Positions 1-64,000 of a DNA stretch of 64,000 nucleotides are shown piece after piece (within the stretch, counting starts at the first letter, position 1; every line of letters begins with the position of its first letter). The stretch covers positions 1 through 64,000 of the forward strand of contig NW_021837026.1 in NCBI RefSeq assembly GCF_006345805.1. Direction: 5' to 3'. The position numbers and the translations under genes are program-made. The notes beneath the pieces are model-generated. The model saw nothing but the letters and a program-made list of their open reading frames with translations. It was not told the origin of the DNA and did not search any database. This DNA is from Octopus sinensis (taxonomy: Eukaryota).

Positions 1-619
1 GTGTATGATTGTGTTCAGTCAAGGTACTCCTTCGAGAGAAAGATTTACCACAGATGTTACAATGATATGGCTTCTCACCTGTATGAACACGTTTGTGATT
101 AGTTAGGGAGCTATTATGTGAAAATGATTCACCACAGATATCACAATGATATGGATTTTCCCCTGTATGAACGCGTTTATGATCAGACAAGTGGCTACTA
201 CGAGAGAATGATTTACCACAGATGTCACAATGATATGGTTTTTCTCCAGTATGTGTACGTTTGTGTCTAAACAAGTCATTACTTTGAGAGAATGATTGAC
301 CACAGATATTGCAATGATATGGCTTCTCACCTGTATGAGTACGCCTGTGCATAGTCACATGGCCACTTTCAGAAAATGATTCACCACAGATGTCACAATG
401 ATATGGTTTTTCTCCCGTATGTGTACGTACATGCCTAGTCAAAGAACTACTTTGAGAGAATGATTTACCACAGACATCACAGTGATGTGGTTTCTCACCT
501 GTATCAATGCATTTGTGTTTGGTCAAGACTGTTTCTTCAGTGAATAATTTACCACAGATATCACAGTGATGTTGCCTCTCACCTGAATCAGGTTTGTTTG
601 GTTTTCTTAAATCATTCAT
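1..619 (-). CDS. G1: C2H2 zinc-finger protein, 5' part (runs off window start)
   Basis: Hand translation from ATG at 619: [67 protein letters not shown]... One degenerate plus 6 intact fingers with no stop before position 1. It is absent from the ORF track because no stop lies in the window. An in-frame upstream ATG is at 640. Confidence 0.9.
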   Translation of the reverse strand, partial: MNDLRKPNKPDSGERQHHCDICGKLFTEETVLTKHKCIDTGEKPHHCDVCGKSFSQSSSLTRHVRTHTGEKPYHCDICGESFSESGHVTMHRRTHTGEKPYHCNICGQSFSQSNDLFRHKRTHTGEKPYHCDICGKSFSRSSHLSDHKRVHTGENPYHCDICGESFSHNSSLTNHKRVHTGEKPYHCNICGKSFSRRSTLTEHNHT

Positions 620-1361
620 TATAAGATAATAATTTCTCATACGTATCACAATGATAATGATTTTTTCATTTCTATGAATATATCTGTGTTCAGTATTTTC
701 AGAGAATAATTTAACACTATGTGTCTTTCGTGTGTGTTCTTGTTTAACATCTAAAATGGCAGATGTAGACTGTTAACACTTTCATAAAGTTATCCAAGCT
801 TAATTAACCAAGCAATCACCTTCACTACATTCGAAACAGTTCAGTTGTGTCAGTATTTTCAGAGAATAATTTAACACTATGTTCTTGCTTAACATCTAAA
901 ATGGCAGATGTAAACAGTTAAAACTTTTGTAAATTTATCCAAGCAATCACCTTTTTTACATTCCAAACAGTGAAGGCAACAAAAAAGTTGCTCTTAATTC
1001 CATCGTAGAAGAAATATTTTCTTATCGTTTGTCGTTGATGCGTTGATGAATGTGCCTTATGAATATATGGCCTTCCATTAATTGATGAAAGTCAATCAAA
1101 ATATCAGAGGCATGTTTAAATGAAGAGATTTCTTTAACGTCAACATGATGTGATATTCTGAAGTAGAAAAAAAGAAGCAGTGAGATAAAGAGAATGATTA
1201 AACAACATAGTAATTCAACATTGCAAATCTTACAACATCAACACTGTCATCCATTTAATGTCTATGTTTTCAGGGGTCAGATTCCATTGAGGCTTTGAAA
1301 CTTTCACAACATTCTGTATATAGATGAAGCGTTTCCACATTTCTCTAAATTCTTACCTGTT

Positions 1362-1541
1362 TTCTTTGGTATGAAACCACCTCAATTCTGGGAAGAGGGT
1401 ATTTTCAAGTTAAAGGAAAGATGGAGACGCATTGTGCAACAAAACGGTTCATATTTGGTTGATTAAAAATGTATTGGCAAGTATTTATTGACCTTTGTCT
1501 TTCCTTCAAAAGTCGGCACGAACTTTCCGGACAACCCAATA
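1362..1541 (+). mobile_element. Mariner transposon 3' remnant (transposase C-terminus plus TIR)
   Basis: 1362-1466 translates FFGMKPPQFWEEGIFKLKERWRRIVQQNGSYLVD*, a typical mariner C-terminus. It is followed by the TIR-like GGCACGAACTTTCCGGACAACCCAATA. Confidence 0.8.
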
Positions 1542-1802
1542 CATATGCAATAATACGTTATACTAGCAGAATCGTTCACATGCCGAACAAAATGCATAAC
1601 AGCATTTCGTCCGTCTACACTCTAAAAGTTCAAATCCCATCCAGGTAGAATTTGGCTTTCATCCTTTCGAGGTAAAAACAAACAAGAAACATTAGCGCAC
1701 ATTGTTCCATGGAAGCGACGTCCGATTCTTCCGCCAATTTTCTGAACTCGTGTCTAAAGTACAAAAAATTATTCTCATCAACACTATTATTATTATTATG
1801 AT

Positions 1803-2040
1803 AGGCTAAGGCGGCGAACTGGCAGAAACGTTAGCACGCCGGGCGAAATGCGTAGCCGTATTTCGTCTGCCGTTACGTTCTGGGTTCAAATTCCGCCGAG
1901 GTCGACTTTGCCTTTCATCCTTTCGTGGTCGATAAATTAGTACCAGTTACGCACTGGGATCGATGTAATTGACTTAATCCGTCAGTCTGTCCTTGTTTGT
2001 CCACTCTGTGTTTAGCCCCTTGTGGGTAGTAAAGAAATAT
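1803..2040 (+). mobile_element. tRNA-derived SINE (family B: AAGGCGGCGAGCTGGCAGAAACGTTAGC...)
   Basis: Multi-copy in the window, with a GGTTCAAATTCC B-box-like motif, and inserted in a (TAT)n run. Confidence 0.8.
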
Positions 2041-2069
2041 ATTATTATTATTATTATTATTATTATAGC

Positions 2070-61210: not shown

Positions 61211-61514
61211 ATATATATGTATATATATATATAAATATGTGTAAGCATATATATTTCTACAAAGATATCTGTATATGTGTGTGTATATATGCACACATAA
61301 GCGATTGTTTAGTGTGTGTATTTACACGTATTTTAGGCGAATTAGCTATGTACATATGTGTGTTTAATTAGATGTGAAGGTGTATATGTCACTATGCCAT
61401 TGCATATTTGGATGCACATATATTTGTACAAATATATATTCATAATTCCTTATTGTGTGTATGCGTATGTAGGTGTCTTACGTCTCTGTGTGTGTAACTT
61501 TATATATGAGCGTA

Positions 61515-61935
61515 TATCATCATCATCGTTTAACGTCCGTTCTCCATGCTAGCATGGGTTGCACAGTTTGACCGGGGTCTGGGAAGTCAGGAGGCTGCAC
61601 CAGGCTCCAGTCTGATCTGGCAGTGTTTCTACAGCTGGATGCCCTTCCTAATGCCAACCACTCAGTAAGTGTAGTGGGTGCTTTTTACGTGCCACCCGCA
61701 CAGGTGCCAGACGGGGCTGGCAAACGGCCACGATCGGTTGGTGCTTTTTACGTGCCACTGGCACGGGGGCCAGGCAAGGCTGGCAAACGGCCATGATCGG
61801 ATGGTGTTTTTTTACGTGCCACTGGCACGAGGCCAGTCAGGGCGGTGCTGGCAACGGCCACGTTCGGATGGTTCTCTTACGTGCCACCGGCACTGGTATC
61901 ACAGCTGCAATTTCCATTGATGTTGATCGATTTCA
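61515..61935 (+). mobile_element. SINE family D (opposite orientation to its neighbour)
   Basis: ATCATCATCGTTTAACGTCCGTTCTCCATGCTAGCATGGG start. Confidence 0.78.
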
Positions 61936-62458
61936 AGTAGTTATTTTGTCTGCTTGTTAATCCACCTTAAGGTTCTTTTTGTCTTCTTCAAGGAACCGAT
62001 ACAGGTTGGCACCTGTGGCGTCACAACTCCTTTCAACAGCTGAGTGAACAGGAGCAGCATGAAATAAAGTGTCTTGCTCAAGAACACAACACGCAGCCCA
62101 GTCCAGGATTCGAGCTCACAACCTGAATCGTATGGTCAAAGCTCTAGCGAGTGAGCCATGCGCGTCTCACACGGACACACATATCTTATTGACATCTTTA
62201 TCATTTCAGAAACAAAGTAGATTGTATTTACAAACCTTAGTTTCATCCTATTGCCATTTATAAGACATAACTATGTCATACCTTCCCCTATTTATTCCTT
62301 CATTTTCTCTCTCACCTTGTCTCGTCTTCTACCCACCCACGCATCCTAGCAGCCGTATTAAGGAGAGCAGGAACTACTCACTCATCTGGTAAAATCAGAT
62401 CAACTGAGTCATCTGTTTTCTGAGAAGTTCTAATTGCTAATTCTTACCTTTATTCACC

Positions 62459-62830
62459 TAGCTGTGTGGTAAGTAGCTTGCTTACCAACCACATGGTTCC
62501 GGGTTCAGTCCCACTGCGTGGCATCTTGGGCAAGTGTCTTCTGCTATAGCTTCGGCCCGACCAATGCCTTGTGAGTGAATTTGGTAGACGGAAACTGAAA
62601 GAAGCCTGTCGTATATATGCATATATGTGTGTGTATATGTTTGTGTTTGTCTCCCTAGCATTGCTTGACAACCAATGCTGGTGTGTTTATGTCCCCGTCA
62701 CTTAGTGGTTCGGCAAAAGAGACCGATAGAATAAGTACTGGGCTTTCAAAGAATAAGTCCCGGGGTCGATTTGCTCGACTAAAGGCGGTGCTCCAGCATG
62801 GCCGCAGTCAAATGACTGAAACAAGTAAGA
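62459..62830 (+). mobile_element. SINE family A
   Basis: Near full-length forward copy. Confidence 0.85.
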
Positions 62831-63684
62831 GAGAGAAAGCGATGCCTTCCCCTATATACTCCCTTCATTTTCTCTCTCACCTTGTCTCGTCTTCTACCCA
62901 ACCACACATTCTAGCAGCCGTATTAACGAGATCAGAAGCTACTCATTTACCTGGCAAATCAGGTTAATTGAGTCACCTGGCATTATGTTCTGTTTTCTGA
63001 GAAGTTCTAATTGCTAATTCTTACCTTTATTCACCTGATTGAAACGGTTGTCTTGCAGGATGTAGCACTTTTGTTCATCAGTAAAGAACGTGTTTGAAAC
63101 AGCTGTAGTGAACCACAGCCCATCTTTGTTATTAATCACTCTTCACCTTACTCAGAACTTTCTTTCGGTTCATTTGCATCTGGAGTCTACAGTCAACAGT
63201 GGAATATGTGCAGTGAGTGTAGTCCTTTATGAATGCGATGACAGTTACTTGTGGATGTATGCATAATTTGAAGGACAAATCCGTATATAATTTATTAAGT
63301 ATATATATGTCAGTGTATGCTATGGGTAAATAGGTGGGTTATCCACAGCTCTACATTGATGTTTAAATATTTAACGAGGTAGGAGCATGAAGGTCAAAGG
63401 ATGATGATGATGATGAAAACACAACAAAGACCAAATCAATGTCACTTAAATCTTTTATTCATTATTCTCTCCTAACAAATTCCTCAAAAACTCCAGCACA
63501 ATCCTCTTCAAACATCAAAGTTCTCACTGTGTTGATATATTTAGATATATCCATGATACTGAAGTTGATATTCATGAAATTAAAGTTGAATACATCAAGC
63601 TTGAAGAGGGAGACACCTTGTCTGGTAGAAGACAAAAAACTCATAATTGTTGATATGTTGTAATAAATTTTTATATTGATATTT

Positions 63685-64000
63685 TTACGCTTGTGTATGA
63701 ATACTCAAATGTCTACTTAAGTGACCTTTTTGAGGGAATGATTTACCACAGGTGTCACAATGATATGGCTTCTCTCCTGTATGAACACGTTTGTGAATAG
63801 TCAACTGACTATTTCTAAAGTATGATTTACCACAGATATCACAAGGATATGGCTCCTCACCTGTATGTGTATATTTGTGTTTAGTTAATTCACTACAAAA
63901 AGAGAATGATTTACCACAGGTGTGGTTTCTCACCTGTATGTGTACGTTTGTGGTCACTTAAATTACTACTTTGAGAGAATGATTTACCACAGATATCACA
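63685..64000 (-). pseudogene. G10: 3' end of a C2H2 gene with an 11-bp deletion (5' part outside the window)
   Basis: CCA CAC CTG TGG TAA near 63920 lacks CATTGTGATAC relative to G8. The last two fingers and the TQA* terminus are the same as G8 at protein level. Confidence 0.7.

Follow-up and report, generated by a model that had tools for sequence, protein, structure and literature searches.

We analysed a cluster of C2H2 zinc-finger genes at positions 1-64000 of VCDQ01005315.1, an unplaced contig (67,320 bp) of the Octopus sinensis assembly GCA_006345805.1. This whole stretch of 64,000 nucleotides is referred to as the window; it contains zero Ns, has a G+C content of 33-48% and is rich in repeats. 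The expansion of C2H2 genes in octopus is among the best-known traits of cephalopod genomes. Finger arrays were called by a six-frame scan for the pattern C-x2-C-x12-H-x3-5-H, which identified exactly ten C2H2 arrays of 3-20 fingers each in the window, and self-BLAST coverage of the whole window revealed no further hidden array. An earlier interpretation made from the letters alone (the sequence-only reading) had assigned the DNA to a coleoid. This origin was borne out by the match to the O. sinensis assembly and by the relatives of a subfamily-A N-terminus: a 69-residue query found matches in Octopus vulgaris, O. sinensis, O. bimaculoides, Argonauta and one further ENA sequence only, so that the named relatives are all Octopus or Argonauta. 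The short N-terminal query was the informative one, as long vertebrate KRAB zinc-finger proteins crowded the matches to a full-length query (gene g7), among which the self-match was missing.

Ten zinc-finger genes and their orientation

In the gene unit of this family, a leader of ~0.65-1 kb precedes a single exon of ~1.2 kb that carries the fingers, and a tail of 0.4-1.6 kb follows; in all ten arrays tandem C2H2 fingers lie on one exon with paralogues side by side. Pfam scored g4 at 6.8e-114 for zf-H2C2_2 and 7.7e-74 for zf-C2H2; it returned zinc-finger families only and neither KRAB nor another effector domain for the finger exon, and a search of Rfam at gathering thresholds gave no match. 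The N-termini split the genes into subfamilies A (g1, g2, g4, g5 and g6), B (g3, g8 and g9, with g10 added by its tail) and C (g7). The units and their parts are as follows.

g1, 1-1794, minus strand: subfamily A; N-terminus [14 protein letters not shown]; array 83-481; ATG at 619; coding runs past the contig start
g1 leader and upstream block, 620-1794, minus strand: 839-1794 matches 31355-30387 at 95.5%
g2, 3880-6662, plus strand: subfamily A; frameshifted mosaic; ATG at 4469; array 4523-5680; tail ends at 6662
g3, 8511-11394, minus strand: subfamily B; N-terminus [14 protein letters not shown]; open frame 9481-10785; array 9493-10560, some fingers degenerate
g4, 19906-23479, plus strand: subfamily A; leader 19906-20585; intact 406-codon open reading frame 20586-21806; array 20724-21794
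Tandem units of ~250 bp, 22251-22988, plus strand: inside the g4 tail
g5, 26113-29005, minus strand: subfamily A; truncated and frameshifted, 6 fingers; ATG at 28405, stop at 27774; array 27786-28268
g6, 30387-33610, plus strand: subfamily A; mosaic; array 31562-32424; in-frame stop and frameshift present in 3/3 assembled copies
g7, 38324-42228, minus strand: subfamily C; N-terminus [14 protein letters not shown]; intact 406-codon open reading frame 40021-41241; array 40027-41187
Repeat insertion in g7, 39585-39856: between the g7 stop and the family tail
g8, 48489-51316, plus strand: subfamily B; array 49131-50872 of 20-21 fingers; one frameshift
g9, 56382-58139, plus strand: subfamily B; intact open frame 56799-58139; array 56883-58121; family tail absent
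g10, 63271-64000, minus strand: 3' end only, frameshifted; array 63697-64000; last fingers and tail repeat those of g8 in inverted orientation

Open frames are intact in g4, g7 and g9, g3 is open with degenerate fingers, and g2, g5, g6 and g10 are broken. The g8 frameshift (48963-50884) is a 1-bp indel that the window shares with another unplaced contig, VCDQ01008377.1, but that is absent from the copy on chromosome CM016885.1 (L003:370-2385), in which the frame is open for 672 codons. This indel may be either an allelic difference or a long-read error, so that 'pseudogene' calls in this assembly require caution. A public annotation model of 413-441 residues runs over window positions 31397-50884 (L005: 358-19839), from the g6 5' end to the g8 stop, and crosses g7 on the opposite strand. 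It is probably a chimeric prediction, although it could reflect splicing between neighbouring same-strand genes.

The strand order of the sequence-only reading, - + - + - + - + + -, was reproduced by the six-frame array scan; with the subfamilies added it becomes A- A+ B- A+ A- A+ C- B+ B+ B-. Orientation alternates at 8 of the 9 junctions (binomial p=0.02 against 0.5), g9 being the sole gene on the same strand as its predecessor, g8, and half of the inverted junctions (4/8) pair different subfamilies. Orientation across the chromosome had been proposed as a check on the inverted arrangement, and the small sample covered here did not lend it support: eight further octopus loci with zinc-finger genes, together ~190 kb of O. 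vulgaris and O. sinensis sequence, contain 10 same-strand and 4 opposite-strand neighbour pairs, compared with 1 and 8 in the window (Fisher p=0.009), and pieces of subfamily A lie head-to-tail in the O. vulgaris locus L001. As these loci are mostly head-to-tail, the alternation is, in this small sample, local and not a rule of the family.

Mirrored flanks, kinship and copied blocks

Divergent partners had been described as sharing inverted 5' leaders, and such leaders of ~0.65-0.85 kb are present in all 4 pairs: g1/g2 (566-1304 with 4522-3919, 87-94%), g3/g4 (10672-11391 with 20669-19914, 80-86%), g5/g6 (28321-28966 with 31508-30894, 86%) and g7/g8 (41188-42144 with 49046-48489, 78-85%). The parallel description of inverted 3' flanks at convergent partners is right for 3 of 4 pairs, and the positions given for it are accurate; it fails at g9/g10, which have no mirrored tail, only dispersed repeats matching between them. 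At g4/g5 the mirrored tails are 21795-22222 with 27785-27371 (91.1%), 22977-23075 with 27078-26980 (90.9%) and 23070-23376 with 26424-26113 (78.5%), and mirrored tails also occur at g2/g3 and g6/g7. The mirror matches of leaders and tails are far beyond chance. Flank comparison showed, however, that leaders and tails are common to nearly all copies, whatever their orientation. Neighbours mirror each other because their gene units lie in opposite orientation, and the term 'palindrome' fits only in a loose sense. Upstream of the arrays, the homology between neighbours extends for 0.65-0.85 kb, and downstream for 0.43-1.6 kb. Arrays are 3.3-10.2 kb apart, and 1.5-9 kb of unrelated, repeat-rich sequence, containing dispersed repeat families and tandem repeats that are unrelated between the arms, separates one arm from the other. 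The ATG-to-ATG distances of the divergent pairs are 3.85, 9.8, 3.0 and 7.75 kb; judged by these ATG positions, a bidirectional promoter shared by head-to-head pairs, with start sites less than ~1 kb apart, is not supported.

Ampliconic palindromes have arms of more than 8 kb that are more than 99% identical, with arms differing by less than 0.2% (PMC8327919). A likeness to such palindromes, with conversion between arms, had been suggested for this cluster and did not hold up. The mirror covers the gene unit only, giving arms of 2.3-3.5 kb that are 75-91% identical (flanks 78-94%, arrays 75-83%), and within the window the arms are not closer to each other than to other copies, same-side flanks of different junctions being closer.

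Kinship among the copies was established from leaders, tails and fingers. Because whole-unit multiple alignment is unreliable inside the arrays, where the register shifts, coding parts were compared finger by finger (84 bp) and in register from the ATG. In the upstream flank matrix the best pairs are g1 and g6 (95.5%), g2 and g5 (94.9%) and g8 and g9 (88.6%), with divergent neighbours at 84-87%. In the downstream matrix they are g5 and g7 (96.3% over 1641 bp), g2 and g6 (95.2%), g4 and g6 (95.1%) and g8 and g10 (91.4%), with convergent neighbours again at 84-87%. The leader comparison placed g2 closest to g5 (97%, bootstrap 100), g1 to g6 (95%) and g8 to g9 (bootstrap 100); the adjacent inverted pairs reached 92% (g1-g2), 90% (g5-g6), 84% (g3-g4) and 64% (g7-g8). 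The closest tails are those of g4 and g6 (95%, bootstrap 100), g8 and g10 (91%, bootstrap 100) and g5 and g7 (the same 96.3% over 1641 bp), compared with at most 82% for adjacent inverted pairs at the immediate tail. Fingers at least 92% identical occur only between g1 and g6, g4 and g6 (up to 99%), g1 and g4, g2 and g4, g8 and g10 (94% and 98%), g7 and g9, and g9 and g4, the last two pairings resting on a single finger each at 92%; adjacent inverted partners reach 90% at most. The coding region of g1 is in register with that of g6 at 95-98% for 420 bp from the ATG. Thus neighbours, which had been taken for palindrome arms, are in no case (0 adjacent inverted pairs in the window) nearest relatives in leaders, tails or fingers. 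The closest kin (92-99%) are non-adjacent: g4 and g6 together with g5 and g7 in direct orientation, g1 and g6 together with g2 and g5 in inverted orientation, and g8 and g10, also inverted. The tails of g4 and g6 (95%) and of g5 and g7 (96%), which lie on the same side of different junctions, exceed the 82-91% of the g4 and g5 tails at one junction, whereas conversion between arms would be expected to give the reverse. Leader, tail and finger comparisons gave no evidence of homogenisation of neighbouring arms within the window.

The non-adjacent pairings belong to duplicated blocks that span more than one gene together with intergenic DNA and repeats.

Block B copy 1, 21683-27745, plus strand: g4 3' fingers, tail, whole convergent spacer and g5 tail
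Block B copy 2, 32313-39585, plus strand: g6 3' fingers, tail, spacer and g7 tail
Block A copy 1, 839-5055: g1 leader, whole divergent spacer, g2 leader and g2 5' fingers
Block A copy 2, 27822-31355: g5 5' part, divergent spacer and g6 leader

The two copies of block B form a direct repeat of 6-7 kb at 90-97%, the longest and best-preserved block in the window, and finger-level comparison extended its homology back to g4 finger 5 and g6 finger 3. A 476-bp repeat family is present in both copies. In copy 2 its unit stands three times in tandem (96%) at 36006-37438, with one unit fewer in the chromosome copy; relatives lie at 24575-25271 in copy 1 and at 42693-43099 in the g7/g8 spacer. The copies of block A form an inverted repeat of 4-5 kb whose successive pieces are 95.5%, 93.5%, 89.9% and 87.8% identical. 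A third block, C, is inverted and matches the last fingers and tail of g8 with those of g10, g9 lying in between. Further direct homologies join the tails of g2, g4 and g6 and the leaders of g8 and g9. Growth by inverted duplication, as first proposed, therefore stands in part: block A and the g8-g10 match are inverted (88-98%), but block B, the longest, is direct.

Several copies are mosaics. The g2 leader is 95-97% identical to that of g5, and its tail is 92-98% identical to those of g4 and g6 against 82-86% to that of g5. The g6 leader and fingers 1-2 are g1-like, and its fingers 3-10 and tail are g4-like; g5 combines a g2-like leader with a g7-like tail; and the chimeric leader of g3 is A-like in its distal part and B-like in its proximal 100 bp. 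In all four genes the relatedness switches inside or next to the finger array. The g2 pattern would be expected from an inversion between the g1 and g2 arrays after direct duplication of the g5-g6 pair, and the matching switch in g1 would fall at or beyond the contig start. The g7 leader is doubled in tandem, with a proximal, g7-specific part (41288-41687) and a distal part (41688-42228) of the type common to subfamilies A and B, which suggests that the present g7 5' end recombined into the leader of an older gene.

Combined, and judged from sequence relationships, these comparisons show that the cluster grew and was remodelled by the copying of two-gene-spanning blocks, either way round, and by exchanges at the finger arrays. 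With a probability of about 0.7, we interpret the locus as a real, lineage-specific O. sinensis cluster of C2H2 genes and pseudogenes that grew in this manner, in both orientations and with exchange between arrays, and that did not undergo homogenisation of the palindrome type. One or a few founding inverted pairs would have been multiplied by segmental copying of two-gene blocks, and non-allelic recombination or conversion between finger arrays would have reshaped the copies. A block reading - + would read - + in both orientations, and an inversion between oppositely oriented paralogues would leave the strand pattern unchanged, so that alternation would propagate itself without fresh inverted duplications; any event on an even-numbered block would likewise preserve it. 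As alternation would be passed on passively, the nine junctions would not represent nine independent events.

Competing histories of the cluster

A number of observations weigh against growth by block copying and array exchange, or limit how precisely it can be reconstructed. Firstly, block B stops short of the coding regions of g5 and g7 and is thus not a simple tandem duplication; it would be an interstitial duplication, or else a long tract of double crossover or conversion whose two ends lie at finger arrays. A simple tandem duplication with a ~10.6-kb period was also considered and rejected, as the leaders of g5 and g7 and of g6 and g8 are only ~70% alike though block B joins the tails. 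Secondly, block A could have arisen by inverted duplication, or by direct duplication followed by an inversion between the g1 and g2 arrays; the g1 3' flank that would discriminate lies past the contig start, and more than one history would fit. Thirdly, the adjacent pairs g1-g2 and g3-g4 stand out in a run test of polymorphic sites (p=0.0005 each), g1 does not differ from g2 (100%) in the 90 bp immediately 5' of the ATG, and the distal leaders of g3 and g4 are 92-100% alike; short exchanges may have taken place between these neighbours. The same test also flags the non-adjacent pair g4-g6. The g1-g2 run is a stretch of 90-165 bp beside the ATG that is conserved in g5 too, its polymorphisms being mostly private to g4 or g6, and g3 and g6 match the likeness of the g3 and g4 distal leaders in most of the intervals compared (88-96%); the sites shared by g3 and g4 fit common ancestry. 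Finally, 3 of the 9 junctions are confirmed in independently assembled copies and 6 are not, and the orientation background comprises 14 junctions only, from loci picked via homologues of one N-terminus.

It is unlikely, though not strikingly so, that chance and ascertainment account for the alternation, new copies being in effect randomly oriented with no process specific to orientation, a few block duplications having multiplied the existing pattern and an extreme case having been picked from many windows. The octopus genome holds many C2H2 clusters, the p value is only 0.02 against a 50:50 model, and at the least the head-to-head junctions g1/g2 and g5/g6, and likewise the tail-to-tail junctions g4/g5 and g6/g7, are copies of each other, giving ~6-7 independent junctions. 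Against the background of 4 opposite-strand pairs among 14, however, 8 of 9 would be an improbable outcome, small as that sample is.

We regard as rather improbable a history in which the left part of the window is one large eroded palindrome, [g1- g2+ g3-] having been inverted to [g4+ g5- g6+] about a centre in the g3/g4 spacer and the inner arms having been blurred later by exchange. The mirror partners g1 and g6 (95-98%) and g2 and g5 (95-97%, leader) are indeed sister pairs of similar age, the midpoint of 1-32200 (~16.1 kb) falls within the g3/g4 spacer (10561-20723), the g2/g3 and g4/g5 spacers are collinear in inverted orientation, and the distal g3 and g4 leaders are 92-100% alike. Yet the overall likeness of g3 and g4 is just 84% and their N-termini differ (B and A), the g2 tail is closer, and in direct orientation, to the tails of g4 and g6 than to that of its mirror partner g5, and the 10-kb g3/g4 spacer has no homology except dispersed repeats.

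Alternation could also be a self-stabilising, possibly selected, architecture of some octopus zinc-finger clusters, a proposal that we consider speculative and improbable. Between inverted neighbours, non-allelic recombination of arrays would yield inversions and chimeric genes, not deletions, and the chimeras would swap the 5' and 3' halves of arrays, as in g2, g3, g5 and g6. If this were true, alternation would protect copy number while finger combinations are shuffled.

Very unlikely is the model of the sequence-only reading, in which adjacent single-gene inverted duplications built a chain of palindromes whose arms are kept alike by conversion. It would account for the 8 inverted junctions of 9, for mirrored leaders and tails at near-symmetrical distances from the arrays, and for the nominally significant concordant runs of g1-g2 and g3-g4 with the 90-bp identity. 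But the arms, at 75-91%, are no more alike than non-adjacent copies, adjacent inverted sister pairs are absent, the same-side tails outdo those of the g4-g5 junction, subfamilies often differ across a junction (A/B, A/C, C/B), the arms are gene-sized against a yardstick of >8 kb and >99%, and the g1-g2 run consists mainly of substitutions private to g4 or g6 in a stretch that g5 also conserves. Within the window this model is largely refuted.

Redundant copies in the assembly bear on the reality of the arrangement. By exact look-up, the intact g7 protein matched three records of GCA_006345805.1 letter for letter, and the open frames of g4, g9 and g3 had no match. One record (L005) is the contig itself, window 30021-51241 at 100% with identical coordinates. 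In the others, 21 kb with g6, g7 and g8 is collinear at 99.88% in VCDQ01008377.1 (L004) and at 99.4-99.8% in chromosome CM016885.1, 12.058-12.080 Mb (L003), the latter differing from the window by one ~480-bp tandem unit. The central 21 kb of the window thus occurs three times in one assembly, in CM016885.1 and two unplaced contigs, at 99.4-100%, and these copies look like retained haplotigs or redundant contigs. This is consistent with the assembly figures: 13,516 scaffolds, 86% of sequence in chromosomes and 5.2% duplicated BUSCOs (PMC10700109). An assembly artefact, such as joins made in the wrong orientation or haplotigs fused into a chimera in this unplaced contig of long reads, might be suspected from those same figures, from a contig that begins within a finger array and from the g8 indel as a sign of residual errors or allelic differences, but it is barely credible, as three records assembled separately are collinear over g6(+), g7(-), g8(+) and the spacers, and the arms differ by 9-25%, where palindromes from chimeric reads would have near-identical arms; the junction distances of 3-10 kb would, moreover, fit within long reads.

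Spacer repeats and comparison with known clusters

The spacers contain several other repeats. The g3/g4 spacer carries a 73-bp satellite of 11 copies at 99% (13941-14742), much younger-looking than the rest of the window. A 1.9-kb element at 43451-45372 has terminal inverted repeats of ~620 bp (97% alike) with internal 155-bp tandem units. A copy of it on O. vulgaris chromosome OX597842.1 (L001:166-2081) matches at 97.8%, and the element looks like a foldback-type transposon, recently active or well preserved. Two short dispersed families at 80-93% in both orientations (8156-8510 and ~7 other places; 12988-13472 and ~5 other places) fill much of the spacers and are the source of many 'inverted' matches outside the gene units. 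Two open frames are repeat-derived: 7607-8203 may resemble the GIY-YIG end of Penelope-like elements, with no Pfam match, and 17781-18747, which sits in a tandem repeat of 318 bp x2.9, may resemble the C-terminal tail of RTE-type LINE reverse transcriptases, again with no Pfam match. A G+C-rich repeat family (local G+C 0.46-0.48) has an internal periodicity of 63-68 bp and long spurious open frames, and Pfam found nothing in it; in all, seven repeat-like open frames of the window had no Pfam match. The copy of the G+C-rich family at 39585-39856 is the insertion that follows the g7 stop and precedes the family tail.

33868-34436: G+C-rich repeat
39585-39856: G+C-rich repeat
55311-55622: G+C-rich repeat
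58184-58310: G+C-rich repeat
59545-60081: G+C-rich repeat
60868-61216: G+C-rich repeat
61513-61927: G+C-rich repeat

In the mouse, the KRAB zinc-finger clusters of chromosome 4 expanded through segmental duplications that copied 3-7 genes at a time (PMC11952569), and growth of this kind is the closest known analogue of the octopus locus. As in mammalian KRAB clusters, lineage-specific poly-C2H2 genes and pseudogenes are set in repeat-rich spacers, multi-gene blocks were copied with their repeats, and partial or interstitial duplications and recombination between paralogues are seen. The octopus cluster differs in that the finger exon has no KRAB or other effector domain in Pfam, the blocks are small (4-7 kb, spanning two genes) and the genes alternate in strand, a feature not found for mammalian clusters in the literature searched. 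With the ampliconic palindromes of the primate X and Y (PMC8327919, PMC3723533) the locus shares inverted repeats that contain genes, with several pairs along one stretch, and inverted paralogues that could in principle recombine to give inversions or conversion. Its arms, in contrast, are short and divergent (2.3-3.5 kb, 75-91%), its spacers are as long as the arms or longer, and its arms are no more alike than non-adjacent copies, so that homogenisation is not evident. The locus resembles the coleoid C2H2 expansions (PMC12513265) in that it comes from Octopus and contains clustered, recently expanded poly-C2H2 genes with TGEKP-type linkers. Orientation, inverted arrangement and palindromes are not mentioned for coleoid C2H2 genes in that paper, orientation is not discussed in the general metazoan zinc-finger literature examined, and literature searches on inverted or head-to-head zinc-finger clusters found nothing.

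In conclusion, the locus contributes a description of local architecture and no new gene class; it is unusual-looking, yet an ordinary kind of gene-family expansion. Base-level accounts of how octopus C2H2 clusters grow are scarce in the literature examined, and the locus supplies coordinates for one. The analysis removes its reading as autosomal palindromes with arm-to-arm conversion in an invertebrate, and it indicates that a striking alternation can be inherited passively after one founding inverted pair. If alternation were enriched genome-wide, this architecture would be of use for modelling the influence of gene orientation on the outcome of non-allelic recombination in families that evolve fast.

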